DNA of 64,000 bases from Octopus sinensis (lineage: Eukaryota). The notes below the pieces were generated by a model that had not been told where the DNA came from, made no database searches, and saw only the letters and a list, made by a program, of their open reading frames with translations. The DNA is taken from positions 128,526,001 to 128,590,000 of the forward strand of contig NC_042999.1 of assembly GCF_006345805.1 (NCBI RefSeq), given 5' to 3'. Below are positions 10,338-52,456 of this stretch, in pieces (positions within the stretch are counted from its first letter, which is position 1; each line of letters begins with the position of its first letter). The translations under genes and the position numbers were made by a program.

Positions 10338-10758
10338 GGATCTTTTCGGTTTGAACGGCAGTTTTTTCTCGCGGTGTCATATGAAATTGTCACCCATAAT
10401 TATGACCCTAGTATCGATCTATTGCATTTCAATCTGTTTTAGGGTTAGGGTTAGGGTTAGGGTGGGGGAAGGGTATCTTTTTTTCTTCAGAAATGTAAAT
10501 AAACCCAATCTGTTTCTTAAACGAGGGACATATTCATACGGCACAGAATGTTTTCACCTCAATAGACGTCATTGATTGGTTGAAATTGCAGAAATTGAAG
10601 AAAAAAAACAACAAATATCTTACAAACTATAGAATTTTCTCAATAAAGCCAATAGGAAAAGATGTTTTATAAACACATTCTACCAGTATACAAAGTTTAA
10701 AAGTGTTTAGTTACGTGGAAATTATTTAAAAAAACTGCCGTTCAAACCGAAAAGGTCC
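10338..10758. mobile_element. MITE with ~30-bp TIRs, TA TSD and internal (TTAGGG)4
   Basis: TA|GGATCTTTTCGGTTTGAACGGCAGTTTTTT ... AAAAAACTGCCGTTCAAACCGAAAAGGTCC|TA; TTAGGG x4 at 10439-10462. Confidence 0.85.
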
Positions 10759-10794: not shown

Positions 10795-11207
10795 TTACTC
10801 TCTTTTACTTGTTTCAGTCATTTGACTGTGGCCATGCTGGAGTACCGCCTTTAGTCGAGCATATCGACCCCAGAACTTATTCTTTGTAAGCCTAGTACTT
10901 ATTCTATCGGTCTCTTTTGCCGAACCGCTACGTTACAGGGACGTAAACACACCAAGCATCGGTTGTCAAGCGATGTTGGCGGGGGACAAACACAGACACA
11001 CAAACACACACACACACATGTATATATATATATACATACATACATACATACGACGGCGTCTTTCAGTTTCCGTCTACCAAATCCACTCACAAGGTTGGCT
11101 CGAGGCTATAGTAGAAGACAGTTGCCTAGGTACCACGCAGTAGGATTGAACCCGGAACCATGTAGTTCGTAAGCAAGCTACTTACCACACAGTCACTCCT
11201 ACGCCTA
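10795..11207 (-). mobile_element. SINE family 2, full length
   Basis: Tail TCTTTTACTTGTTTCAGTCA through head CTTACCACACAGTCACTCCTACGCCTA, homologous to other copies. Confidence 0.85.
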
Positions 11208-11252
11208 TTATTATTATTATTATTATTATTATTATCATCATCATCATCATTG

Positions 11253-11566
11253 AAGCGGCGAACTGGCAGAATCGTTAGGATACCGGGGGGCGAAATGCTT
11301 AGCGGTATTTCGTCTGCCACTATGTTCCGAGTTCAAATTTCGCCGAGGTCGACTTTACCTTTCATTCTTTTGGGGTCGATAAATTAAGTACCAATTGAGC
11401 GCTGGAATCGATGTAATCGACTTATCCCCTCCCCCAAAATGGCTGCCCTTGTGGTAAAATTTGAAATAATCATTGTTATTACTATTATTGAGGCGGCGAG
11501 CTGACAGAATCGTTAGCACACCAAGCAAAATGCTTAGCGGCATTTCGGTTCGTCGTTAGGTTCTGA
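11253..11566 (+). mobile_element. SINE family 1 (tRNA-derived): full copy plus second truncated head (11491-11566), after (ATT/ATC)n
   Basis: GCGGCGAACTGGCAGAATCGTTAG head (A box), GAGTTCAAATT (B box), TTTCATTCTTTTGGGGTCGATAAATTAAGTACC core. Confidence 0.85.
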
Positions 11567-14542: not shown

Positions 14543-14567
14543 GGGCTTTGTGCCTAGAGTAGAAAAG
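14543..14567 (+). mobile_element. 25-bp SINE-tail-only insertion with 18-bp TSD
   Basis: GGGCTTTGTGCCTAGAGTAGAAAAG flanked by AATATCTATAGTTGATAC at 14525-14542 and 14568-14585. Confidence 0.75.
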
Positions 14568-14589
14568 AATATCTATAGTTGATACTCTG

Positions 14590-14720: not shown

Positions 14721-15184
14721 TTACAATTGATAAATACATGATATGTATAAATCAAGAAATAATTCTCAAAGAGAATATAATTGTTAGAAGAAACAGGAGT
14801 AATTTAAGTTGAAGCAAGAAAATTGTCTTATCAACCGTGAGACTGAAAACACACGTAGCTTCTAGCTGTAAAAAGTCAAATGTCCCCCAAAGAGCTGAAA
14901 TTCAGGTTCTGCATATATGCTTTCCCCAGAAAATTTTTGAATGGTCTGACGGCAAAATTAGACACGAATAATAAACTTTTCCTTTAGGCTAACACAGCAA
15001 CCAGAAATCAGAGATATTTTGCTAAATATTACTTTCTACTCTAAGCACAAGGCCCGATATTTTGGGGGAGGGGCCAGACGATTAGATCGTTCCCCAGCAC
15101 GCAACTGGTACTTAATTTGTTGACCCCGAAAGGATAAAAGTAAAAGTCGAATTTGAATTCAGGACGTAAAGACAGACGAAATAT

Positions 15185-15356
15185 CTATTTCTTTACTACC
15201 CACAAGGGGCTAAACATAGAGGGGACAAACAAGGATAGACAAACGGATTAAGTCGATTAGATCGATCCCAGTGCGTAACTGATACTTAATTTATCGACCC
15301 CGAAAGGATGAAAAGCAAAGTCGACCTCGGTGGAATTTGAACTCAGAACGTAACGG
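15185..15356 (-). mobile_element. SINE family 1 variant B (Tx1-like tail) nested in the host SINE
   Basis: B box and core plus tail TATGTTTAGCCCCTTGTGGGTAGTAAAGAAATAG; flanked by CAGACGAAATA(T/C) at 15173-15184 and 15357-15368. Confidence 0.9.
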
Positions 15357-15620
15357 CAGACGAAATACGAATTTCTTTATTGCCCACCGGGGGCCAAACA
15401 TAGATATGGACAGTACAACTGATGGGATCAGTGAATCGATATGATTTTACATAAATGTGACATCAAAAATAAAATACAATACATAAAAATCGAATGGAAT
15501 ACACAGTACAAAAACAATACAAATGAAGCGATGATCAAGTTACGCTCCGATCCCACAAGCCCCGATCTACCGCTGATACCTTTTTATTTTTCCTATTTTT
15601 TTTTTTTTTTCCTCGTCTAT

Positions 15621-18600
15621 TCACACGGTTCCTTGCACGCACAACACTCGTGCAACATACTTCCATCTCTTTTGGAACGTACACTCTGACAGACACCTCT
15701 TCTCCAGCCACAGTTTCCTTTTCAAATGAAAAGAAAAAAAGGATCGTAAATTGTCACCAGAGATAAAGTTGCCTGTCTTAATTCCTTTTATCCTAGTCTT
15801 CCATACAGCCTCTTTTGCTATTGCTACAACCGTGAGAAAACAATTCTTACCTTCGTTCGCTAGAACTCCCGGTGGGTCAATTTTTATAATTGACTCAGTC
15901 GACAGCCGTACTCTTCCTTCGCCGGACAACAGATGTTCAGCATAAGCCCACATTTCAGTTATCTCCGGACACTGAACAATAGCGTGAGGGACGGTTTCCC
16001 TGTCCCCCCCCCCCGCATCTTGGACAGGTCGGCGACTGACGTTTACCATGTCTTGCGAGCTTATCCCAAACGGGCAAGGCACCTCTGTAGCATTGCCAGG
16101 TTAAGGACTTTTGGAAGTTGTCCAACGTTCTCAACTCGAATGTACGATGAAACAAGCTGTCCAGTTGAATAAATCCGAGACCTAGAGTCGACCCCAGGTC
16201 ATCGTCACATTCAGACTCTACCAACCCACTATATAAAATCCGTGTGGAACCCCCACCGCTGGCGTTGCCCGAGCGCCGGAACAGCAAGAGGGCCTTACGG
16301 CACTCTTTATGCCACTCACTCGACCTCGGTCTACGAGAACACCAGGCTTCCTGTTCGCAAAAACTCTTGAACTCAGGGAACATTTGTCTGGCCAGCGGAG
16401 ACCACACCCGTTCACTATCCAGGAGAATCCAGAGGTGCCTCAACCTCAACGCATGTCTGCGCATCATTAACCAAGGCATCCCTAAACCTCCATTTAAAGG
16501 CTTTTGACAGCAGACAGAGCGTTTCACAAGTGGCGACCTGCCCTTCCACAAAAAGCGAAAGAGCTGTCTCTCCAACCTGATCAACCACGAATCCGGACAG
16601 GGCACGACGGTCAGGCGGTAGGTAATGACCGATGCGATAAACACATTGGCCACTTCCACCCTCCTTTTCAGGGATAGCCACCGCCAAGACCAGGTCTTGA
16701 CTACTGCAGCCACCCTGCTCAATACCTCCGTCCAGTTCTTCTCTATCTGGAGGCCTGGTCCAAACCAGACTCCCAGCAACTTAACCGGTCCCTCCGTCCA
16801 GCACCTAACAACACTGTCTGAAGGCATCGACTTGCCAACCCAGGTGCCGAGCTGCAAGCCGACCGACTTTTCCCGGTTAATCTTTGCTCCTGCTACCTTC
16901 TCGTAAGCCTCAATAGTCTTACCTACTTCACGTAGGCGTGCCACTGTGGTTACACTGGTAGTGATATCATCCGCGAAAGCCGTAACAAACTCCTCTAGTC
17001 CTGGTTCTCTCGGGATGCCACTCAACCTTTGCAGTAATGGCTCGAGAGCCATCACATACAAAAGTGGTGAAAGCGGACATCCTTGACGAACCGAGCGTCT
17101 GATGCAGAACGGCTTCGAAAGGAAACCGTTCACCCGAACTATCGAGTCAATGTTGTGGTACAAAGCGATAAACCACCTGAGGAAGCCAAGGCCCAGGCCA
17201 AACCGCGCAAGTACAGTCGCTAGGTATCGATGGTCAACCCTATCAAAAGCTTTAGACTGGTCCAAATGCACCAATGCCCCACCTTTGCCAGATTTATTAC
17301 CAAACTCTCTCTATGGTATAGCGAATAAGATGGAGGGTATCCTGAATGGTTCTGCCTGGGATGGCACATGTCTGTGCCTCCCCGACTATACCATTCGCGA
17401 CACGCGCCAACCTTTTTGCTAGAACCTTGGCCAAAATCTTCACTTCTGCGTTTAACAGAGTGATGGGCCTGAAATTCTCTAGAACGTCCCCCTTGTCCGG
17501 GTCCTTTCTGACCAACGTCACTACTCCCCGGCGCACAGATCTGGGGATAAACCCATTCTGTTTCCAGTTCGCGTACACGTCAGTCAGTAGTTGCCCGAAC
17601 AAGTCTGGCATACATTTATACAGCTCGTACGGAAGACCATCAAGTCCCGGTGACTTACCCGCTTTACAATCGGCCAAAGCCTCCATCACCTCCTCAGGTG
17701 TGATTGGCCCTTCGCAAGACTCCGCATCCGACCCCGAGAGGCACGGAAGCCCGGTAAGAAAGTCCTCGAGGGCTCTCCCACCACCAGGACCGCCGTCACC
17801 CCCGAACAGCTGGGCGAAGTACTCCCGAAAGACCTCACACATTTTCTCGGGTTCGTTTATCAAGACACCATTTTGATTCGTCAAAGACCGAATAGAAGAA
17901 CTATTTCCTTGCCGAGCTTCCACCACTCGAGCCCATCCAGCGGCTTTGATTCCTTCACTTCCCATTGCACGTAACTTAGCTCTGGTAATACTTCCCATGT
18001 GGTGGGCTTCAAGATGCTGGTTTAACTCCAGTCTTTTCACCCTCGCTTGGTCTGTATTACCAGTCCTCCAGGCTTCTTCTAGTTCCTTAACTAGACCATC
18101 TCCTATTTTACGTCCCTTCTTAGCTAAACTTATGCTAAACCTAATAGACTCATATTTGATGACTCTTTTTAGGGAGTACCACCATTTGTTATTAATGATG
18201 GTACCTGTTAATGCCCTCTGTATTAACATCTTGATCCGCTTTCTGTACTCCTCAATCGCCAAAAGGGACGTATTGAGTTTCCAGTAGCCAGATCCCTGTC
18301 TATGCAACTTATCTACCGTCAGTTTACAGGTAACCATCTTGTGGTCACTGTAGCTGACTAGAAAAAACTGTGGACACTCAACTATGGACTTATCTTTTTC
18401 TCTAATTAAAATCCTATCTAGATATGTTCTGGTAGACCCGTCACTATTTGACCACGTCCACTGTGGAGTGTTCGGGTGCTCCAACCTATATGGATCTGCT
18501 AGCTGAAATTGACTTAGCAGATCCCGAAAGCCTGGGTTACATTTTCTGTTCATGTTCGAGTTTGAGCCAACACAATCTGTGTGTGCTGCACATATTGTAT

Positions 18601-19029
18601 TAGAGTCTCCTAACTACTACTAGTGAATGCGACGTGGCTAGGAACTTTCCTAGGCCACGAAAATATTCAGTTTGCGGGCCAATAATGTTTGTGCGTAAAT
18701 AGCGACCAGCCTGATTGTCTTGCCACAACTGAATGTCAAGTCGAGAACGACCAGCCTGCCTTCTGGGTCAGAAAAAAACAACTTTTTCTCGGCTACCCGG
18801 TTTCTTTTTAGTAGGACCAACACCCCACCCCACCTCCCGCCCGACTCGGAGAAACGTATTTCTCGTAGCCGTTCAGGAGGGGGAGCAGATCTCTTGGCCC
18901 CTTCACCCGGGTTTCCGTTGCAACAATTACATCCAAATTTCTCGACCTGATGTCATTCAGAAAGCGTCCTTGCTTCCAGCTTGACAACAGGCCATGAACA
19001 TTTAAACAACCAATGTGAATAGCCATCAC
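15621..19029 (-). pseudogene. Tx1 ORF2 (APE endonuclease, reverse transcriptase, C-terminal CxxC..H..C), frameshifted
   Basis: IGCLNVHGL...DVIVATET (APE); SDHKMV; GYWKLN; KSPGLDGLP; NFRPITLLNAEVKILAK; LDQSKAFDRVDH; VRQGCPLSPLLY; AFADD; GGLGMP; CPRC...ETVPHAIVQC; about 4 frameshifts. Confidence 0.93.
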
Positions 19030-19037
19030 TTACCTGC

Positions 19038-20594
19038 TTAATTAGGATTGTCCGGTGGAGGGGGACCCTCCACCTTTTTTTGATCCAGGGTCGGAGGTGG
19101 ACGGTCTTGGGAAATAGATCTGTCAAAATCCCGTCTCACCACCGACACAGAATTATCAGGTGGAGGGGGAATCTCCACCTTTTCCTTTTCTCGCGGGATC
19201 GGGGCTGGTAATCCATGAAATATCGACTTGTTAAAATCTAATCTCAATGAAGATACAGTCTTTCTGTACTTATTTTGTAGAATTCTATAAGTCTTATTTG
19301 AGACTTCATATATGTCGTAATTGATAAATTCCTCTGAAAGGTTATCAATTTTTTTTACACAGTCTTTATGAGTTGAATGTCTCTCATGAGCTCAGTATCT
19401 TTAGTGTATACGGCTATTATGCCTTTTTCTTCTTTTTCTCTTCTGGCAGTCTTTTTTGGTCGTTGTTCTGTAGTAGTCGCCGCTCTCGGCTGGGTTGCTG
19501 GTTGTATTTTTCTTTTGTTTGTTGTTTTTTTCTCATCTGTTTCTTCTTTATCTTTCCTCTTTGTCTTTTTTCTCCTCTTCCTCCTCTTCTTCATTTTCCT
19601 TGCAGTTCCTTCGAATGTGGCCTAATTGACCACATAAAAAACATCGAGGTTTTCGGCCCTCAACAAACACCACGAGGTTCTCCTCCCCTACCTCAATTGT
19701 CTCAGGAATTGTTTTGAATTATTTTAGGGTCCGCTTGAATGAGAAGATTAATTGTTTGACCATCCCAGCGTGGGTTTTCCGTAGCGGTAGCCAGGAGGAG
19801 AGTAATTTTTTCTACCTCTTTGATTAGGACTGCCGCCAACAACCACATAGGTTCGACCTCTGGCGGGACCCTTGTAATTTTTATTCGCGACGTCCTCATC
19901 CCCATATAATAGGGGGTTAACTCCACGTCGTTCGTTTTCAATGTTTCAACTGAGTTCTTGTGTGCTATTTCTTTATTGGTGAACCTTACTTCCGCCGTTC
20001 CGAATTTTTTTCCTCTTCTCAGAAATACTACGTCGCCCAATATTGGCTTTAAGCACTTTTCTATTTTCTCTTCTGACATTCTTTCAATTTTTCTTTTTTG
20101 TAGACAATATGTTTTGAAAATTATTGTTTTTTGCTTTTCTTCCTGTAATAACTTTTGCGGAGGTTCAATTTTCACACGTTGTCAGTTATTTCCATCATTT
20201 TGCTGTATTTCATAATTTCGCTTTTATTCGTCGACAGTATCTGGGTTCCACCCCCAGCAGCCAACGCAAAACTTTTTTTTCCATTTTTTGGTTCTATCTG
20301 GATGCTAGGCACATCAATTATTCTCTTCGATACAATGCCTTTGTTCTCTGGCAGAGTCGGAAACTCTTCTGGTGAAAGTTCTGACGAGCTCTCAGACACA
20401 TCTCCAAAAATATCAAATATATTATCCTCTCTGCTATTCCTTCTTGTAGCGGGGGAAACCCCTATTTCCTTGTCTGTAGTTGGCTCCTCGCCGGACATGT
20501 ATTTCCTCCTCTCAACAAGAGAAACAAGTATTTCTGCTCCAACGGTAGGCTCCATGCTAGACGACATTCTTCCCCCCAAAGGGGGAATGAACAA
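19038..20594 (-). pseudogene. Tx1 ORF1 (gag-like, CX2CX4HX4C knuckle), frameshifted
   Basis: ORF pieces 20172-20594, 19702-20175, 19355-19594, 19038-19247; CFLCGQLGHIRRNC encoded at 19602-19643; ends 8 nt before ORF2 ATG. Confidence 0.8.
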
Positions 20595-21769
20595 CGCGTG
20601 CTACCACAAGCACTAAGTGTTTTCAATTGAAAACTCCAACAGTTAAGTTATTCAACAGTTTAACAAGAAACAACAGTTGTTAACAATATTAACACCACGA
20701 AACAGCAATTCTTACTTCACGAACACACGTGCGACAGACGAAATACGGCTACGCATTTCGCCCGGCGTGCTAACGTTTCTGCCAGCTCACCGCCTTGGTA
20801 TTTTGCTAAATATTACCATATACAGTATTGTTGTTTATCTACAACAAACATATTAAGTTTATATTGCCAAATATTGTAATAGCTATTTTAGTTTTAGGAC
20901 TTAAACATTCCGGTTCGAATCTCAAGAAAAGCTAACTGTCACAAAGGTTTGGATCACATCAATGTTGATTACTATGTATTAGTCCCTTTCACTGCGAAAT
21001 TAAGTTCCATGGTTATTCCAGTAATGATGTTAAATATTTACATAAAATAAAATAAAATAGATTTGGCATTTTCTACAAGTCATGAGACCTCAATAAACTT
21101 GGCATGCTTCAACAGAAAATAGATTCAGACATGACATTCCTTAACAAAAGATGGATTGCTATATAAAACCACTTTCCGTAGTTAAGGATAATGAAACTTT
21201 GAGTGGATATATCTTCTTTTCGCAGCAAAAGGGTCAAAGTAATAAGCGATTTAATCTTGATCTGTTGGAAATGAGGGAGCAGTAGAAAATGCTGCTCTTG
21301 CAACTAGATTAGTGAGGTAGTGGAGTTATTCTTGATGTCATTTAGCTCCAGGTTAGCTCCACCTGGGTAGATCTAAGAAGACCTAAATAGACCTAAGCAG
21401 ACCTAAGGTGTTCAACCACGATCATCATGTTTTCTCAAGCATATGATCACCTAGGACTACATTGATTAGTGGTTTCTTTCTTTTTTATGACACGGGTGCA
21501 TGGTTGCTGGAGATTCGATATTTCTTGCTATCCAAGTGATCACGTATTGGCTCCCACAAATGAATTGTGTTATGTATATATATACATATATATATACATA
21601 TATATATATATGTATATATATACATATATATATACATATATATATATATTGGTTGTATACATATCTCTATGAGATATTTAGAAATTTTATATTTTTGATA
21701 TATATATATTGTATGCATGTATGTATATATCATCATCGGGCTGTATCCACAAACCAATGCGGTCGGTTG

Positions 21770-22271: not shown

Positions 22272-23817
22272 TACACACACATACACAGCAGGATGTAATA
22301 TGTATGCATGTATGTATGTAACTTATATAATCAGATTATGCGATAGAACCAGCTCTAAAATATAAGCATTATCAATACCATATACTTAACGTACTTGCGT
22401 TATTGTAACGTCTGAAATTGTGGTTCTTCTTCAGTGAGAATTTCTTTTAGAGATGTATAGTGTTAAAAATAAACATACAGTTCAGAACTAGGCTAAACAA
22501 AATCGCCCCAGAAATGATCACGAGAGCGTTAGATACGTATTTCATTGTATTTGTAGCTTATCAATACTGCATACGCGACTCACTTCCAAAACGAAATCGA
22601 AACTTTTAACCTGAAGTATATACAGATAGTGTAAAAACTATTTGCTCCTTTGCAATGTTGCTGCACAAATAGAATAAGCAACACACGTGCGTTAAATATG
22701 CGGTCGTGGTAATGTTTCCATTATAGAACGTCTTCTATTGCATAATCTAAATTTATTTTAATTGTGCAGCACTATTGCAAATCAGCAAATACTTTTTTAC
22801 TCTATCTGTATACATTTCAGTTTGGAGATTTCAATTTCGTTTCAAAAGAGTCTCTAACATGCAGCATTGATAGGTTGCAAAAAAAGAGCGAAATAGGTAT
22901 CTACTCTTTCTCGAGTTCACTGTGGCGCGATTTTATTTCGCCTAGATCTGAAGTATACAGTGTTTTTTAATCTTTATATAATATCTCAACAAGAAGTTAT
23001 GTAATCCTAACAGTTAATTTAGAGAAACGCGTGTATGCTTTATAAACATAAAATATCATATATTTTTTCTGTATTTTATTAATACTATGTGTGTGCGCGT
23101 GAGCGAAACTATAAAGCTTAAACTATACAAATCTTGCAGCTATTTCAACTATTTTCCCCCTTAGTACATAAAATACGTCTCCTCTTTTCGCTTGTTCTTT
23201 TCTTTTTCTCTTTATAAATCGCTATCAGTAGATTCGCTTTATGGAACTTTGATGCAAACAACGTTCGGTTGTTCTACAAAATTAATTCTTATTTACGTCC
23301 TTTGTAAAGGTTTTGCCTTGTCTAAATTTAAACGTCGATAAGGAAAAAACAAAATGGAAAATGTTTATTTTTGTTGGCATATTGTTAGTCTTCTATTTAA
23401 AACACCCACACTGTGGTCTGAATAAGCATTATTTGATTAGTTCAGATATTTTTCCAATGACGTACTGTTTGCGAAGGTGCTGCAAGATAAAAGATTAGTA
23501 TATATTTGTTTTCATTTGTTAAAAACAAATGAGTCACTTTAGTATACAGAAATACTTCTCCCTTTGCAAAATCTTACTCCTATTGAGGAGCAGCATATAA
23601 TTTCAAATGCTAAGTATTTCGATTCAGGCTCAATACATAGTTATGAAACTTACACCTTTATTTCTCTGCTTTAATTCCTACACAATGGACAACAGCAAAA
23701 ATGGGACACTACATTGAAAAGCTTTAGATCAGTGGTTCTTGACCGGGTCCACATGGCTCTTAGGGGTCCTGCATGTCACTAACCCTAACCCTAACCCTAA
23801 ACCTAAACCTAAACTTA

Positions 23818-26769: not shown

Positions 26770-27710
26770 AACGCAGTCAAATTCACATTTGGAACTTGAG
26801 AGAAGTTTTGCGTATCTTTACTGTTCCACTCACAGATTGCACTTGTGATGTACGAATTGGCCGGTCAATTTCTCTTTCTGAAAATCCCAGTTTATTCAGA
26901 TTCTCCTTTAAGCATTTACTAACAAAACATAGTGCTCCAATCATTATTGGTATGAATATGAATTCATAGTCTGGATATAGAAGCTAGAGGTTTCGAAGCA
27001 GTTGTTTATAGATATCCTCTTTTTCTTTGATTTTCAAAGAGATATTTATATCTGCAAGGCAGCTGATTTCTATGATGGTAATACCTTTGCTCCTCTGTCC
27101 CAAATAACAATATCAGGCTTTTGCTCCTCTGTCCCAAACAACAATATCAGGACTGTTATGTTTACTTTTGACAGAAGTTTTGATGGGAATATACCACCAG
27201 TATTCCTTGAATTGGTGTTTTTGAATGTATTCCATAACAGAGATTTTCTAAGTTTATTTCAGGACAGTCTTTTTTGCGGATGGCATTGTAAATTGCTTTA
27301 GCAAAAACATCATGCCGCATAGGAAAGTAGTATTATGATGACTTTCCATAACAGAAGAATTTTCTTAGCTTATTTCAGGACAGTCGTTTTTTGCGGGTGG
27401 CACAGTAAATTATTTTAGTAACAACATCGTGTCGCATAGGGAGGTAGTACCGTGACGACATTTTAGGACAGCTGCTAATCACATGCGTGATGCCTTCCAA
27501 AGAAACATGACATAGCCTACACATGCAGTTGCATCTTGGGATTACAAGAGCGTCACTGTCTCTCTTGTTCACCAGGTATTTTGTGGCAATCTCCTGTCCC
27601 GGGATTGCAAACACATAGCCCTCATAGTGTGATGTGATATAGTGGTCTTGTGGCCAAGAGAGGTTGCGCTTTTTGTCAATTCTACTGTTTTCTTCAAGCT
27701 TCCGTGCAAC
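26770..27710 (-). pseudogene. R4/Dong-like RLE retrotransposon 3' fragment (distinct subfamily), with ~115-bp internal tandem duplication at 27240-27470
   Basis: FAIPGQEIATKYL; CRLCHVSLEGITHVISSCP..RYYLPMRHD; KPDIVIWD; FIPIIIGAL; GTVKI. Confidence 0.75.
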
Positions 27711-29783: not shown

Positions 29784-30148
29784 TTTGTTATTCTTGGGTA
29801 CTTTCTGTAAAATTATTAAAATTTTGTTCAAACATCGCTATAGAAAATGGGTTTATTGCTAATATTCAATTGGGTATACAACAAAATTTTACGATAGAAT
29901 TTGTTATTCTGGGTAACTTCTGTAAAATTATTAAAATTTTGTTCAAACATCGCTATAGAAAATGGGTTATTAGCTAATTTCAATTGGGTATACAACAAAA
30001 TTTTACGATAGAATTTGTTATTTTCTGGTAACTTCTGTAAAATTATTAAATTTTGTTCAAACATCGCTATAGAAAATGGGTTTGCTAATATCAATTGGGT
30101 ATACACAAAATTTTACGATAGAATTTGTTATTCTGGGTAACTTTCTGA
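29784..30148. repeat. Minisatellite, ~110-116-bp unit x ~3.2
   Basis: Units start TTTGTTATTC at 29784, 29900, 30014, 30124. Confidence 0.9.
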
Positions 30149-40249: not shown

Positions 40250-41379
40250 TTATATGTATGTTTGTATATATATATGCATGTATGTGTGTATGTATGTGTG
40301 TATATGTATATATATTTATATACGTGTTATGTGAATACGTACTCCTTTATTTTACTTGTATCTTCCCTCACACTTGCACCCCTGTATGTGTATGTGCGAG
40401 TGTATGTATATATATATATGTGTGTATGACTGTATATACTTGTGTGTTAAGTGTCACTTGTAAATTTATAATTTCTCCTTCATATATTCCTTTTTGTTTC
40501 TATTTTTTCTGATTGTTTCCCCTACCCTAGGCTAGTGTTTGAGTAAGGTAACTCTCTTGAATACACCGCTGGTCTTGTCTGTGATTGATGTTTTCTCCAT
40601 GTTACGTTCTCTTTGGGGTTTTTTCTCTGCCCGTATGTATATTTTTTTAGTGTTGCCTATCACTTTTAGCCTCGTGTAATGTATATATTTTTTCGTTTTT
40701 CAATATTAATATGTATATGTATAACTCTCTATGGCTTTTTTCTGCTAGTGCACTTGCTGCATTATATTCTACTATACACACGTGGCACTTGCTGCGTTAT
40801 ATTCTACTATACACACGTGACCCTGTTTACATTATACTTTGTCTCGACCTGTTACTATTTCTTAAAACATATCCGTGAGATTTTTATTTTTATTTTATGT
40901 TATAATTTACTGCACATATAGACTTGCATATACATTGATATGTCTGTCTTTTTTTTCTCTTTCGTCTCTCTCACTGTTATTATTACTGTTATTTTTCCCT
41001 TTTGCAACTTTTTTTGTAAATATCCGATTTTCCCCAATTATCCCATTTGTATTCTCCCTTATTGCATCTTATTTTAATTTATTTTATGTCATTAAACCTT
41101 TCTTGATGTCCTTCCAAAACTTCCTCACACTAATGAGAATGACAATGCATAAATCTAATTATAATTACTATGATTATAATTTTTCTTACATATTTGTATT
41201 GCCCTTTGAAACATGCGTATGTATTGAATCCAATTTTCTCCACCATTTTTTTAATACTTGTTTATGGTATATTTATACCTATAACGATATTTTTCAACTA
41301 CGTATGTATATATGTATGTGTGTATGTATTCATGCATGTACATATATATGTGAATGCATGTACGTATACGTGTATGGAC

Positions 41380-45750: not shown

Positions 45751-46310
45751 CGACAATTGGAAGTTTCAAGCAACTTTCTATTGCATCATTTGTTGCACCT
45801 TTGTGCTGGTGGGGTGGTACGTGCTGCTCTTTTTTAGGTGGGGGTGGATATTGTATTTTTATCTGTATGTTTTGTCATGGGATTTGGTTTGAGTCTTCTG
45901 TTGTATTAGTTTTTCTATTGTGTGTTGTTTGTATAGCGTACGTTATGTTCTTCTGTCGGGTATCAGCCTTCTATGGCACATATGAGTTTTGTTCATAGTG
46001 TTGGGTACTTACAGAATGGATGGGTGTTCTTGTGGAGGTATTGCATAGTAGTGTATGTAAATCATAGATCAACTATTTCATAGTATTTACGATTAATTAC
46101 CCTCCCTTCTTTCTCTTTTTGGTTGGCCTTGTCATGGGTCTCGCTTTTACAGCGTTAACACCGCCGATGGACATATGTTGATGTTTCTTTCGTAATTATA
46201 ATTATAATTACTATTCATGTATCAGCGAGAGACCGAGAAGAAATAGTAATGTGCATATATATATAGAGGTCTTGTATAGATATGGATATATATGTAATTA
46301 AAATATATTA

Positions 46311-46341
46311 TTATTATTACTATTATTACTACTATTACTAC

Positions 46342-46384
<43 letters not shown>
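46311..46384. repeat. (ATT)n microsatellite
   Basis: Direct reading. Confidence 0.95.
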
Positions 46385-46386
<2 letters not shown>

Positions 46387-46822
46387 GGCGGCGAATTGAC
46401 AGAATCGTTAGCACGCCGGGCGAAATGCTTAGCGGCATTTCGTCTGTCTTTGCGTTCTGAGTTCAAATTCCGCCAAGGTCGACTTTACTTTTCATCCTTT
46501 CGGGGTTGATAAATTAAGTACCAGTGAAACACTAGGGTCGATGTAATCGACTAGTACCCTCCCCAAAAATTTCAGGCCTTGTGCCTCTTGTAGAAAGGAT
46601 TACTATTAAGTTGGTCAACTGGCAGAATCGTTAGCACGCTGGTCGAAATGCTTAGCGGTATTTCGCCCGTCGCTACATTCTGAGTTCAAATTCCGCCGTG
46701 GCCAGCTTTACCTTTCATCTTTTCGGGGTCGATAAAATAAGTACCAGTTGAACACTGGGCTCGATATAATCGACTATCCCCCTCCCCTAAAATGGTTGCC
46801 CTTGTGGAAAAATTTGAAACCA
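46385..46822 (+). mobile_element. Two complete family-1 SINEs in tandem (46385-46590, 46608-46822) within (ATT)n
   Basis: Each has its own head, core and tail; neither is interrupted at the GTATTTCGTC site. Confidence 0.85.
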
Positions 46823-46856
46823 TTCTTCTTATTATTATCATTATTATTACTACTAC

Positions 46857-46893
<37 letters not shown>

Positions 46894-46911
46894 TATTATT
46901 ATTATTATTAT

Positions 46912-47030
46912 TGAGTGAGAGAGCAGTGCATGCCATCAAAATGACACTGGGGTAAAATATACCAATCATGACTACCCGTCTGATAAAATTACACCAGGCA
47001 CATGCATCACAACCATATGTTGTGACATTA
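46912..47030 (-). mobile_element. 3' end of an unclassified retroposon with (AAT)n tail
   Basis: ...GGCATGCACTGCTCTCTCACTC(AAT)n on the minus strand. Confidence 0.4.
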
Positions 47031-47145: not shown

Positions 47146-47229
<84 letters not shown>

Positions 47230-47239
47230 AGCGCATGAA

Positions 47240-48293
47240 ATAATAATATTATTATTAAGCGCATGAAAACCCGTGCTAAATCTGCGGCCTTAGATATTCT
47301 GAATAATAAATGGCAAGAAAAACCTCTCTATGGCAAATACCCAAAGAGAGCAAATAATGCAGATGTTGACAAAGCCCTGACCCATCAATGGCTAATGGCC
47401 TCTGGTTTAAAATCTGAAACAGAGGGGTTTATCATAGAAGCTCAAGATCAATGCCTACCAACAAGAAACTACCAGGCCAACATATTAAAGATCAGAAGCA
47501 GTCCAACGTGTCGTGTATGCAAGCAACAAAATGAAACCATTGACCATGTGGTCTCCAAGTGCAGTCTTCTAGCGCCTACAGAGTATCTCAACAGGCACGA
47601 TAGAGCTGCACAATATATTTACTGGGTAATCTGCAAAAACCTAGATTTGCCCCATGAAAAAAACTGGTGGGAACACAAACCACCCCCAGTGCTTGAAAAT
47701 GACCACATCTCACTCCTCTGGAACTTCACCATTCAAACTGACAGAAAGATAGATGCAAATAGGCCAGACATCATATTGAAAGACTTCAAACAAAGAACAT
47801 GCCTCCTCATTGATATGACTGTCCCAATCGATATAAACGTATCTGTCAAGACCTACCAAAAACTGAGCAAATATAAAGATCTTGAAATAGAAATCAGCAA
47901 AATGTGGAACCTGAAGACTAAAACAATACCTGTTGTCATAGGTGCCCTGGGAATGATAGCAAAAGGGACTGATAGCTACCTAACTCAGATACCAGGAAAC
48001 CCAAAAATGGCAGAAATTCAAAAGATAGTGCTCATGGGAACTGCTCATATCCTACGCAAAATACTTTCTATGTAATCTCAAGGTTTAAAACAAACATAAT
48101 TTTCGGTTTAAAAAAAACAAAAAAAAAACAAAAAAAAGACAACTTTTTTTAGACATTCATTAGTACAAACCCCCAAATATATGGCACACTAGGCATAACA
48201 ACAACATGAACTTCCAACCCTGTTGTCTCTTGAGGTCTCTGGGTGAGACTTGGAGCCAACTTGTACAAATATAAAGCAAAAGTCAAACATAGA
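47240..48293 (+). mobile_element. Young 5'-truncated R4/Dong-like element in (TAA)n
   Basis: Uninterrupted 270-aa ORF 47263-48075; (AAT)n at 47149-47210 and 48294-48483. Confidence 0.92.
47263..48075 (+). CDS. C-terminal part of R4/Dong ORF (CCHC finger and restriction-like endonuclease)
   Basis: GLKSETEGFII.AQDQ; CRVCKQQNETIDHVVSKC; EYLNRHD; RPDIILKD; LIDMTVP; KLSKYKDL; IPVVIGALG; open but 5'-truncated, so not a complete gene. Confidence 0.8.
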   Translation: MKTRAKSAALDILNNKWQEKPLYGKYPKRANNADVDKALTHQWLMASGLKSETEGFIIEAQDQCLPTRNYQANILKIRSSPTCRVCKQQNETIDHVVSKCSLLAPTEYLNRHDRAAQYIYWVICKNLDLPHEKNWWEHKPPPVLENDHISLLWNFTIQTDRKIDANRPDIILKDFKQRTCLLIDMTVPIDINVSVKTYQKLSKYKDLEIEISKMWNLKTKTIPVVIGALGMIAKGTDSYLTQIPGNPKMAEIQKIVLMGTAHILRKILSM

Positions 48294-48338
48294 ATAATAA
48301 TAATAATAATGATGATAATAATGATAATAATGATGATG

Positions 48339-48373
<35 letters not shown>

Positions 48374-48416
48374 CATAATCATGATAATAATAATAATAAT
48401 GATAATAATAATAATG

Positions 48417-48482
<66 letters not shown>

Positions 48483-48504
48483 TAACAAAAACAAAAACAA
48501 AAAC

Positions 48505-50904: not shown

Positions 50905-51080
50905 GGTGAGCTAGCAGAATCGTTAGCACGCTGGACAAAATGCTTAGCGGCATTTCGTCCGCCTTAACCTTCTAAGTCGATTTCATCGACCTCAGTGATT
51001 AGCTGGTATTTATTTCATCAACCCCGAAAGAATGAAAGGCAAAGTCGACCTCAGCGGAACTTGAACTCAAAGTGTAAAGA
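50905..51080. mobile_element. Broken family-1 SINE: head on plus (50905-50965), core on minus (50975-51080)
   Basis: GAGCTAGCAGAATCGTTAGCACG...; CCCCGAAAGAATGAAAGGCAAAGTCGACCTC. Confidence 0.65.
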
Positions 51081-51459: not shown

Positions 51460-51559
51460 GAGAGAGAGATACATACATACATACACAATTACCTCACAAA
51501 TGATGCAGCAATAGATTTTCCACTTCCCTTTTGGCGTCATCGATATTTAGTCTGCAACA

Positions 51560-52133
51560 GCAGCGAGCTGGCAGAAACGTTAGCATGCCAGGCGAAATGC
51601 TATGTTGTATTTCGTCCGCCGCTGCGTTCTGAATTCAAATTCCGCCGAGGTCGACTACCTTTCATCCTTTCGGGGGTCGATAAATTAAGTACCAGTTACG
51701 CACTGGGGTTGATGTAATCGACTTAATTCGTTTATCTGTCCTTGTTTGTCCCCTCTATGTTTAGCCCCTTGTGGGTAGTAAAGAAATAGGTATTTCGTCT
51801 GCCGCTACGTTCTGAGTTCAAATTCCGCCGAGGCCGACTTTGCCTTTCCTCCTTTCGGGGTCGGTTAAATAAGTACCAGTTATGCACTGGGGTCGATATA
51901 ATCAACTTAATCCGTTTGTCCTTGTTTGTCCCCTCTACGTATAGCCCCTTGTGGACAGTAAAGAAATAGGTATTTCGTCTGTCTTTACGTTCTGAGTTCA
52001 AATTCCGCCGAGATAGACTCTGCTTTTCATCCTTTCGGAGTCGATAAATTAAGTACTAATTGCGTACAGGGGTCGATCTAATCGACAGGCCCCCACCCCC
52101 AAAATTTCGTTGCTTGTGTCTAGAGTAGAAAAG
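51560..52133 (+). mobile_element. Family-1 SINE array: one head, two Tx1-tailed (B) units, then host body with tail A
   Basis: GTATTTCGTC at 51607, 51790, 51970; units end AAAGAAATAG; degenerate 16-bp TSD GATATTTA(GT/CG)CTGCAA at 51542-51557 and 52134-52149. Confidence 0.9.
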
Positions 52134-52456
52134 GATATTTACGCTGCAAAGAAAATCTATTTTCAGTCAAATACGCACAACGACACACATACACACAAAG
52201 GCACACCGACACATACTAACACACAGATATGTACACATACGCACACAAGCGCTCACACAGGCACACAAATATGTTCATTCATATTCTACACATACACACT
52301 CATATTTGCACATAAGCACACACCGACTGAAAGCAGAAATATCGACATTCAACGGAACATATCATGCCAAAAGAGTTTTACCTTTTTCATTTTTTCATTT
52401 CTTCTGTCTCTCACAGAAATTATACATACATGCATACATACATGCATACATACATG

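Follow-up and report, generated by a model that had tools for sequence, protein, structure and literature searches.

Repeated insertion at a hairpin site of a tRNA-like SINE as the probable origin of a short tandem array in Octopus sinensis

Introduction

Tx1-group long interspersed elements (LINEs) are known for target preference, and their targets include other transposons (PMC4494074, PMC3747384). In the crocodilian pair SINEU-3/Tx1-Mar, one site in Mariner is preferred and is flanked after insertion by a target-site duplication (TSD) of ~16 bp (Kojima, 2015, Genome Biol Evol; PMC4494074). Tandem copies of SINEU-3 that sandwich the TSD at the Tx1-Mar target were ascribed to sequential insertion; preference was partial for some families (13-90%), the criterion being that the same sequence flanks >20% of copies (PMC4494074). 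Here we describe an array at positions 51542-52149 of a 64,000-nt stretch of Octopus sinensis DNA (contig NC_042999.1, 128,526,001 to 128,590,000, forward strand; hereafter, the window) that is made of parts of a tRNA-like short interspersed element (SINE), together with a second locus in the window at which a LINE occupies the same site. SINEU-3/Tx1-Mar is the closest precedent, in that a SINE and a LINE have a preferred site inside another transposon. However, in crocodilians a Mariner DNA transposon serves as the target and the tandem copies are whole SINEs, whereas the octopus target is part of the SINE family's own tRNA-like head. The inserted octopus SINE thus brings its target along, and the units that it adds are head-less and recur with a strict period of ~180 bp.

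Three further systems invite comparison. Tx1L in Tx1D of Xenopus laevis, Keno, Kibi, and Koshi are likewise L1/Tx1-group LINEs with an apurinic/apyrimidinic (AP) endonuclease that occupy a defined sequence in a repeat (PMC4494074, PMC3747384); in the octopus, by contrast, the target is a SINE, a non-autonomous partner uses the same site, off-target copies exist, and the LINE is only Tx1-like. SINE-derived satellites and tandem-like SINEs of squamates (PMC10702118) and bivalves (PMC11481361) are also arrays of units made from parts of SINEs. Those arrays, which can be long, have been ascribed mainly to unequal homologous recombination, whereas the octopus array is short, its units are not sisters, and its unit boundary is the LINE insertion site. 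Finally, microsatellite-targeting LINE/SINE pairs produce head-to-tail SINE runs from a regenerated target (compare 11254-11560 and 46306-46912 of the window), but, unlike in the octopus array, what is added is a whole copy and the target, a simple repeat, is external to the element. A literature search with Repbase outside its scope found no published description of the octopus LINE/SINE pair, and literal array sequences had no match in papers. What sets the octopus case apart from SINEU-3/Tx1-Mar is a target within the SINE family itself, a parasite of the LINE that bears its own landing site, and a head-less, strictly periodic array.

Results and Discussion

Layout of the Array

Four B-type or LINE 3' ends, at two loci, adjoin the same base of the SINE. 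Because these four junctions fall at one nucleotide position, repeated, site-preferential insertion that regenerates its target is probably the best explanation of the array. On the plus strand, the array is enclosed by the outer TSD of an original A-type SINE, whose left copy GATATTTAGTCTGCAA (51542-51557) and right copy GATATTTACGCTGCAA (52134-52149) match at 14/16 positions. A single SINE head (51558-51606), which aligns with other SINE heads and holds an A-box-like region and the 5' arm of an anticodon-like hairpin, is followed by two units that share a tail designated B. Unit 1 (51607-51789; 183 bp) comprises the site GTATTTCGTCCG, a SINE body with a B-box-like motif, and a LINE-derived tail B (51723-51789). 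Unit 2 (51790-51969; 180 bp) has the site GTATTTCGTCTG, body, and tail B, together with a 4-bp deletion and a subfamily motif, TTAAATAAG, that is common to a solitary copy in Octopus bimaculoides. The target itself, an older A-type SINE, resumes at the site GTATTTCGTCTG with its body and tail A (51970-52133).

Both unit junctions of the array read AAAGAAATAG followed directly by GTATTTCGTCTG, and Tandem Repeats Finder reported 51607-52083 as a repeat with a period of 180, 2.6 copies, 84% matches, and a score of 673. Exact copies of the junction 22-mer AAAGAAATAGGTATTTCGTCTG lie at 51780-51801 and 51960-51981, and copies with 1-2 mismatches lie on the minus strand at 15173-15194 and 15357-15378; these four matches in the window compare with 0 expected from 100 shuffles. 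Tail B is confined within the window to two loci, 51542-52149 and 20815-15015 (minus strand).

A LINE at the Same Site

At the second locus, a single A-type SINE with a perfect 17-bp TSD is split exactly at the junction spot of the array (20815 to 15015, minus strand). The upstream copy of its TSD, TAATATTTAGCAAAATA (20799-20815), and the downstream copy (15015-15031) are identical 17-mers. Read on the minus strand, the upstream copy is followed by the SINE head (20747-20798), which is now 5.5 kb away from its own body, and by the site GTATTTCGTCTG (20735-20746). The latter is the TSD of an L1/Tx1-like LINE (15369-20734) of 5.4 kb, which contains several frameshifts and ends in ...CTATGTTTGGCCCCCGGTGGGCAATAAAGAAATTC. 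Directly after the LINE 3' end lies one B unit with the site GTATTTCGTCTG, body, and tail B (15185-15368) and, after it, the body and tail A of the split SINE (15032-15184), beginning ATATTTCGTCTG. Thus, the LINE is flanked on both sides by GTATTTCGTCTG; the duplication is 12 bp, or 14 bp if the next two nucleotides (TC), which also match the A-type context, are counted. Since carriage of a 5.4-kb LINE in a SINE transcript is implausible, the LINE must have been inserted in place at the hairpin site. Moreover, the LINE that donated tail B occupies the very base at which B units are placed and has its own target duplication, which is a signature of insertion and not of recombination.

An earlier, sequence-only reading of this DNA had proposed one head, two ~180-bp tailed units, and a body with tail A at 51542-52149, all enclosed by a degenerate 16-bp TSD, and this layout was borne out. 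It had also claimed the same site and geometry at an independent locus, as the minus-strand junctions at 15173-15194 and 15357-15378 confirm, and insertion that regenerates its site within a SINE already in place, which is directly visible where the LINE lies inside the SINE with the 17-bp TSD.

The LINE and Its Relatives

The LINE encodes an ORF1 with a CCHC knuckle, an AP endonuclease, a reverse transcriptase (RT), and a C-terminal cysteine motif. Pfam searches matched PF00098 (5.6e-05) in the ORF1 region (20600-19551, minus strand) and, on stitched frames, PF03372 (2.8e-08) and PF00078 (2.6e-19). Among solved structures, the best match was human L1 ORF2p (2.6e-56, vs. ~1e-20 for R2). Judged by its sequence, the LINE belongs to the L1 superfamily and has Tx1-like features; the Tx1 label of the sequence-only reading stays putative, with indirect support from published octopus repeat annotations, which list L1-Tx1 as the sole L1-superfamily LINE class and do not mention targets. 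The last 34 nt of the LINE match tail B at 29/34 positions; a longer comparison with the solitary B copy of O. bimaculoides gave 38/42. Accordingly, the 3' tail of the B-tailed SINE is homologous to a LINE 3' end, as in LINE-dependent SINEs.

Protein homologues with 59-60% identity, whose database entries bore no clade names, were found in Argonauta hians and in an NCBI assembly, the closest of them on a 3-kb contig that ends before the homologue's 3' end. The A. hians relative (L001, 6867-12667) has its 3' untranslated region (UTR) twice: an additional, 5'-truncated copy lies internally, 135 bp after the first 3' end, and the spacer between the two UTR copies has a B-box-like motif. A more distant relative, of 41% identity, was found in the European Nucleotide Archive (ENA) sample ERZ21867824 (L004/L005) as head-to-tail tandem copies with a 6.6-kb period and 99.5% identity; its 3' region holds GGCCTTGTGCCAAATTTG, a motif of the standard tail of octopus SINEs. 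No octopus SINEs were present in ERZ21867824, the non-octopus source of the ENA relatives. Within the window, a 5'-truncated LINE fragment at 47263-48290, with a 270-amino acid open reading frame (ORF) and a weak zf-RVT match (7e-06), lies between (AAT)n tracts at 47148-47211 and 48293-48485 and is a candidate microsatellite-specific LINE.

The SINE Superfamily and the Hairpin Site

The window is AT-rich (36% GC) and rich in one tRNA-like SINE superfamily. BLAST of the array region against the window returned about a dozen copies; their identity to the copies in a 76-kb O. bimaculoides sequence (L003) is 72-95%. All have the head and body in common and differ in their tails: the standard tail ends in ...GGCCTTGTGCCAAAATTTGAAACC, tail A in ...CTTGTGCCTAGAGTAGAAAAG, and tail B, of 67 nt, in ...TAGCCCCTTGTGGGTAGTAAAGAAATAG. 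Neither tail B nor the SINE core had an exact match among JGI metagenome contigs, which include no octopus DNA. In the head, motifs that resemble A and B boxes accompany an anticodon-like hairpin; ARAGORN and Rfam gave no tRNA call for the head, and neither program found a match in the array, L001, or L004.

Between the A-box-like and B-box-like motifs lies a 13-bp hairpin (-16.3 kcal/mol, z = -4.4) with GGTATTTCGTCTG as its 3' arm. The insertion point lies where the loop meets this arm (51590-51625 and all SINE heads), and the duplicated 12-mer is the arm itself. Insertion at this boundary explains why the inserted units have the B box and lack the A box. A-type SINEs that are intact and without B units occur in L003 (12921-13133 and 66206-65987), as does a dispersed, full-length B-tailed SINE with a head and a TSD (40900-40600, minus strand). 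Therefore, A and B are separate elements and not one composite family.

The TSDs of A-type SINEs begin (A/G)ATAT or TATTT, and the former suggests that the A-type family also re-uses a regenerated target. Three full-length A-type SINEs stand directly head-to-tail in L003 (66640-65990, minus strand). In the window, a 5'-truncated tail-A fragment of ~27 nt (14548-14575) with a 16-bp TSD, TATCTATAGTTGATAC, adjoins another SINE fragment, and at 50908-51080 a SINE head that ends 2-3 nt past the insertion site (…GGCATTTCGTCCGCC) gives way to a SINE body that is inverted and head-less, a structure that could be another event at the insertion site or a rearrangement. Standard-tail SINEs stand head-to-tail within (ATT)n/(TAT)n microsatellites at 11200-11560 and 46306-46912: the copy at 11254 is immediately followed by another head, and at 46388-46830 two copies lie between TAT and TTA tracts. 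This arrangement looks like microsatellite-targeted insertion through another LINE partner.

Strength of the Site Preference

The 12-mer of the site occurs eight times in the window, vs. 0.22 expected, and always in SINEs. TATTT alone occurs at 542 sites in the window, ~9 of them in SINEs, and by a rough inference a preference for TATTT only would place 4/4 hits in SINEs with a probability of ~1e-7, or 2/2 loci with one of 3e-4. Considering these counts, a short-motif preference cannot explain why all four events are in SINEs. B-tailed SINEs are at the hairpin site for 3/4 tails and 2/3 loci, and the one LINE copy is at the site with a TSD, the sample being small: it comprises 140 kb (the window and the 76-kb L003), which is too little for a frequency. 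L003 itself was reached through an O. bimaculoides "protein" of SINE sequence, the sole match of an antisense ORF that spans the junctions; a chimeric six-frame query for further SINE-containing octopus gene models returned no match.

Several observations, given here and among the alternatives below, weigh against repeated insertion at a preferred site. The full-length B-tailed SINE in L003 is solitary and lies at a non-SINE site with a TSD of ~14 bp, ATA[C/A]TATAAGGCCT, and a possible second solitary B-tailed copy in L003 runs into an assembly gap. In seven L003 SINEs the site is intact and unoccupied. The relative in Argonauta, 60% identical to the LINE, also lies outside SINEs, at an AT-rich site where its TSD of 17-19 bp, TATTTTTAAAATTTGTA, starts with TATTT. 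A short motif preference may thus be behind part of the apparent specificity. Finally, the evidence consists of two loci, one LINE copy, and arrays of at most two B units. Because of the solitary non-SINE copy and the unoccupied sites, the preference is not absolute, and it may differ between species. Self-targeting, as the sequence-only reading had it, consequently stands in part: site-preferential insertion into SINEs is upheld by the LINE locus, whereas strict specificity is not established, given the off-target B copy and the seven empty sites. We read the data as a family-wide core preference near TATTT, to which the LINE/SINE pair adds a strong preference for the hairpin site.

Of two assembly gaps in L003 that start within copies of B-type SINEs (40790-40800 and 68500-68935), one is an unclosed overlap whose 57-bp flanks are identical and the other has at least 430 N, such that the repeat structure at these B-type loci may be under-assembled.

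Independent Insertions and Alternative Origins

The alternative that survives best, which we nonetheless consider unlikely, is a single site-targeted B insertion followed by local duplication, whether by slippage or by unequal exchange at the 12-bp sites or bodies, like the "target-site triplication" of Alu. Exchange between TSD copies has been invoked for SINE arrays (PMC11481361, PMC10702118), and site-B-site-B-site-A is the product expected of it; furthermore, just two units are present, and two informative positions (alignment columns 17 and 105) unite the neighbors. However, units 1 and 2 are 89-90% identical, i.e., 10% diverged, while each is 90-92% identical to the unit at 15368-15185 and so overall at least as close to the unit of the other locus. 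Three informative positions, including the TTAAATAAG/AAATTAAG motif, join unit 2 not to its neighbor but to the O. bimaculoides B copy. Taken together, the informative positions weakly favor different source lineages for the two units. A hybrid unit would be the usual outcome of exchange between B and A bodies, yet unit 2 is of B type from base 13 on and no A/B hybrid unit was seen, which disfavors unequal exchange; it would have to be confined to the first 12 of ~115 homologous bases. The other locus, in addition, proves that the LINE and the B unit reached the site each on its own. Thus, among the 3-4 units available, neighbors are not closest relatives, junctions are invariant, and hybrids are absent. 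The question of whether neighboring units are sisters, raised in the sequence-only reading, was thereby answered in the negative, and the array may record two separate insertions; slippage or unequal exchange as the origin of unit 2 is disfavored and no more. Two other parts of that reading are not established: "satellite-like arrays," as no long, homogenized arrays were found in the 140 kb, where the maximum is two B units, and insertion of B into B, as the targets seen are A-type SINEs, though B carries the same site.

Still less probable is a composite master, in which a head-B-(B)-A source element was retrotransposed whole by the partner LINE of tail A and the outer TSD records one event. 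A single outer TSD does surround each composite, and B units are found in both of the window's complete A-type SINEs and in 0 of ~7 standard-tail copies. Yet A-type SINEs without B units are intact in O. bimaculoides, the two loci have different numbers of units, and the array-borne A bodies are 81% identical to each other vs. 84-87% to solitary A copies. The LINE within the outer TSD also shows insertion in place at the site. Moreover, A parts look older than B parts: Jukes-Cantor (JC) divergence from their own consensus is 0.10-0.115 for target A bodies and 0.06-0.08 for B units (0.10 vs. 0.07-0.08 at 51542-52149), which fits a target that was there first and inserts that came later, the age difference not being statistically solid.

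A template-switched, chimeric cDNA made in a single event, in which RT stalls on A-type RNA at the hairpin or at a loop-cleavage end and jumps repeatedly to the 3' end of B RNA, would account for the one outer TSD around everything and for a breakpoint at the loop/3'-arm boundary of so stable a hairpin, but it is very unlikely, for it leaves the GTATTTCGTCTG duplicate upstream of the LINE 5' end unexplained, needs a jump from the LINE 5' end to an internal SINE position, and predicts a stall at the stem base and not past a copied 3' arm. Two simpler candidates were discarded: chance recurrence of the junction by the 12-mer and 22-mer counts relative to expectation, and simple adjacency of whole SINEs by the units without heads between them.

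Proposed Mechanism

If the array arose by repeated insertion, its history may have been as follows. An older A-type tRNA-like SINE would have inserted at 51542-52149, making the 16-bp outer duplication, and B-tailed SINE RNAs would later have been reverse-transcribed into it at one preferred spot, presumably in two events. The last ~35-40 nt of these RNAs copy the 3' end of the L1/Tx1-like LINE, the likely supplier of endonuclease and RT. Target-primed reverse transcription would begin where the bottom strand is nicked, at the left boundary of GTATTTCGTCTG, and a top-strand nick 12-14 nt downstream would result in duplication of the 12-mer. Since the 12-mer is also part of the B RNA, the cDNA could pair with the exposed, single-stranded overhang of the target, and the 5' junction would form at this pairing to give one "site + body + tail B" unit of ~180 bp per event. 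Such pairing would explain why no head is duplicated and why each event adds one exact unit. An intact site would be recreated on both sides of the insert, so the locus would stay a target and could grow.

Agreement of the upstream site copy with the A-type context over 14 nt points to the LINE as the earlier insert at the second locus and to the B unit as the later one; in this order, pairing over the TSD alone would be sufficient. Read-through transcripts with downstream target sequence could aid homing, which is speculation here and has been discussed for other target-specific elements (PMC4494074). We advance only tentatively the wider proposal that the SINE hairpin is the homing site both of the L1/Tx1-like LINE and of a SINE that carries the LINE tail and the site, that each event adds a 180-bp unit, possibly helped by read-through, and that this constitutes a genome-wide route in octopuses by which an interspersed SINE becomes satellite-like DNA.

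Tandem repeats in the window can, then, grow by retrotransposition besides recombination. SINE-derived arrays in molluscs, reptiles, and plants are usually credited to unequal recombination; here, the unit boundary is a regenerated endonuclease target. If general, the process could explain part of the unusual SINE landscape of octopuses, would extend the known targets of Tx1-like LINEs to a SINE, and would provide a natural example of a non-autonomous element with its own landing pad. It would also call for caution in annotation, as such arrays would be nested insertions and not new SINE subfamilies or satellites.

Other Repeats in the Window

Tandem repeats unrelated to the SINE array are present at 27230-27449 (period 117 bp, 1.9 copies) and 29784-30143 (period 114 bp, 3.2 copies, 92% matches). 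Two short stretches of interstitial telomere-type sequence, (TTAGGG)4 at 10439-10463 and (CTAACC)5-6 at 23779-23812, are also present.
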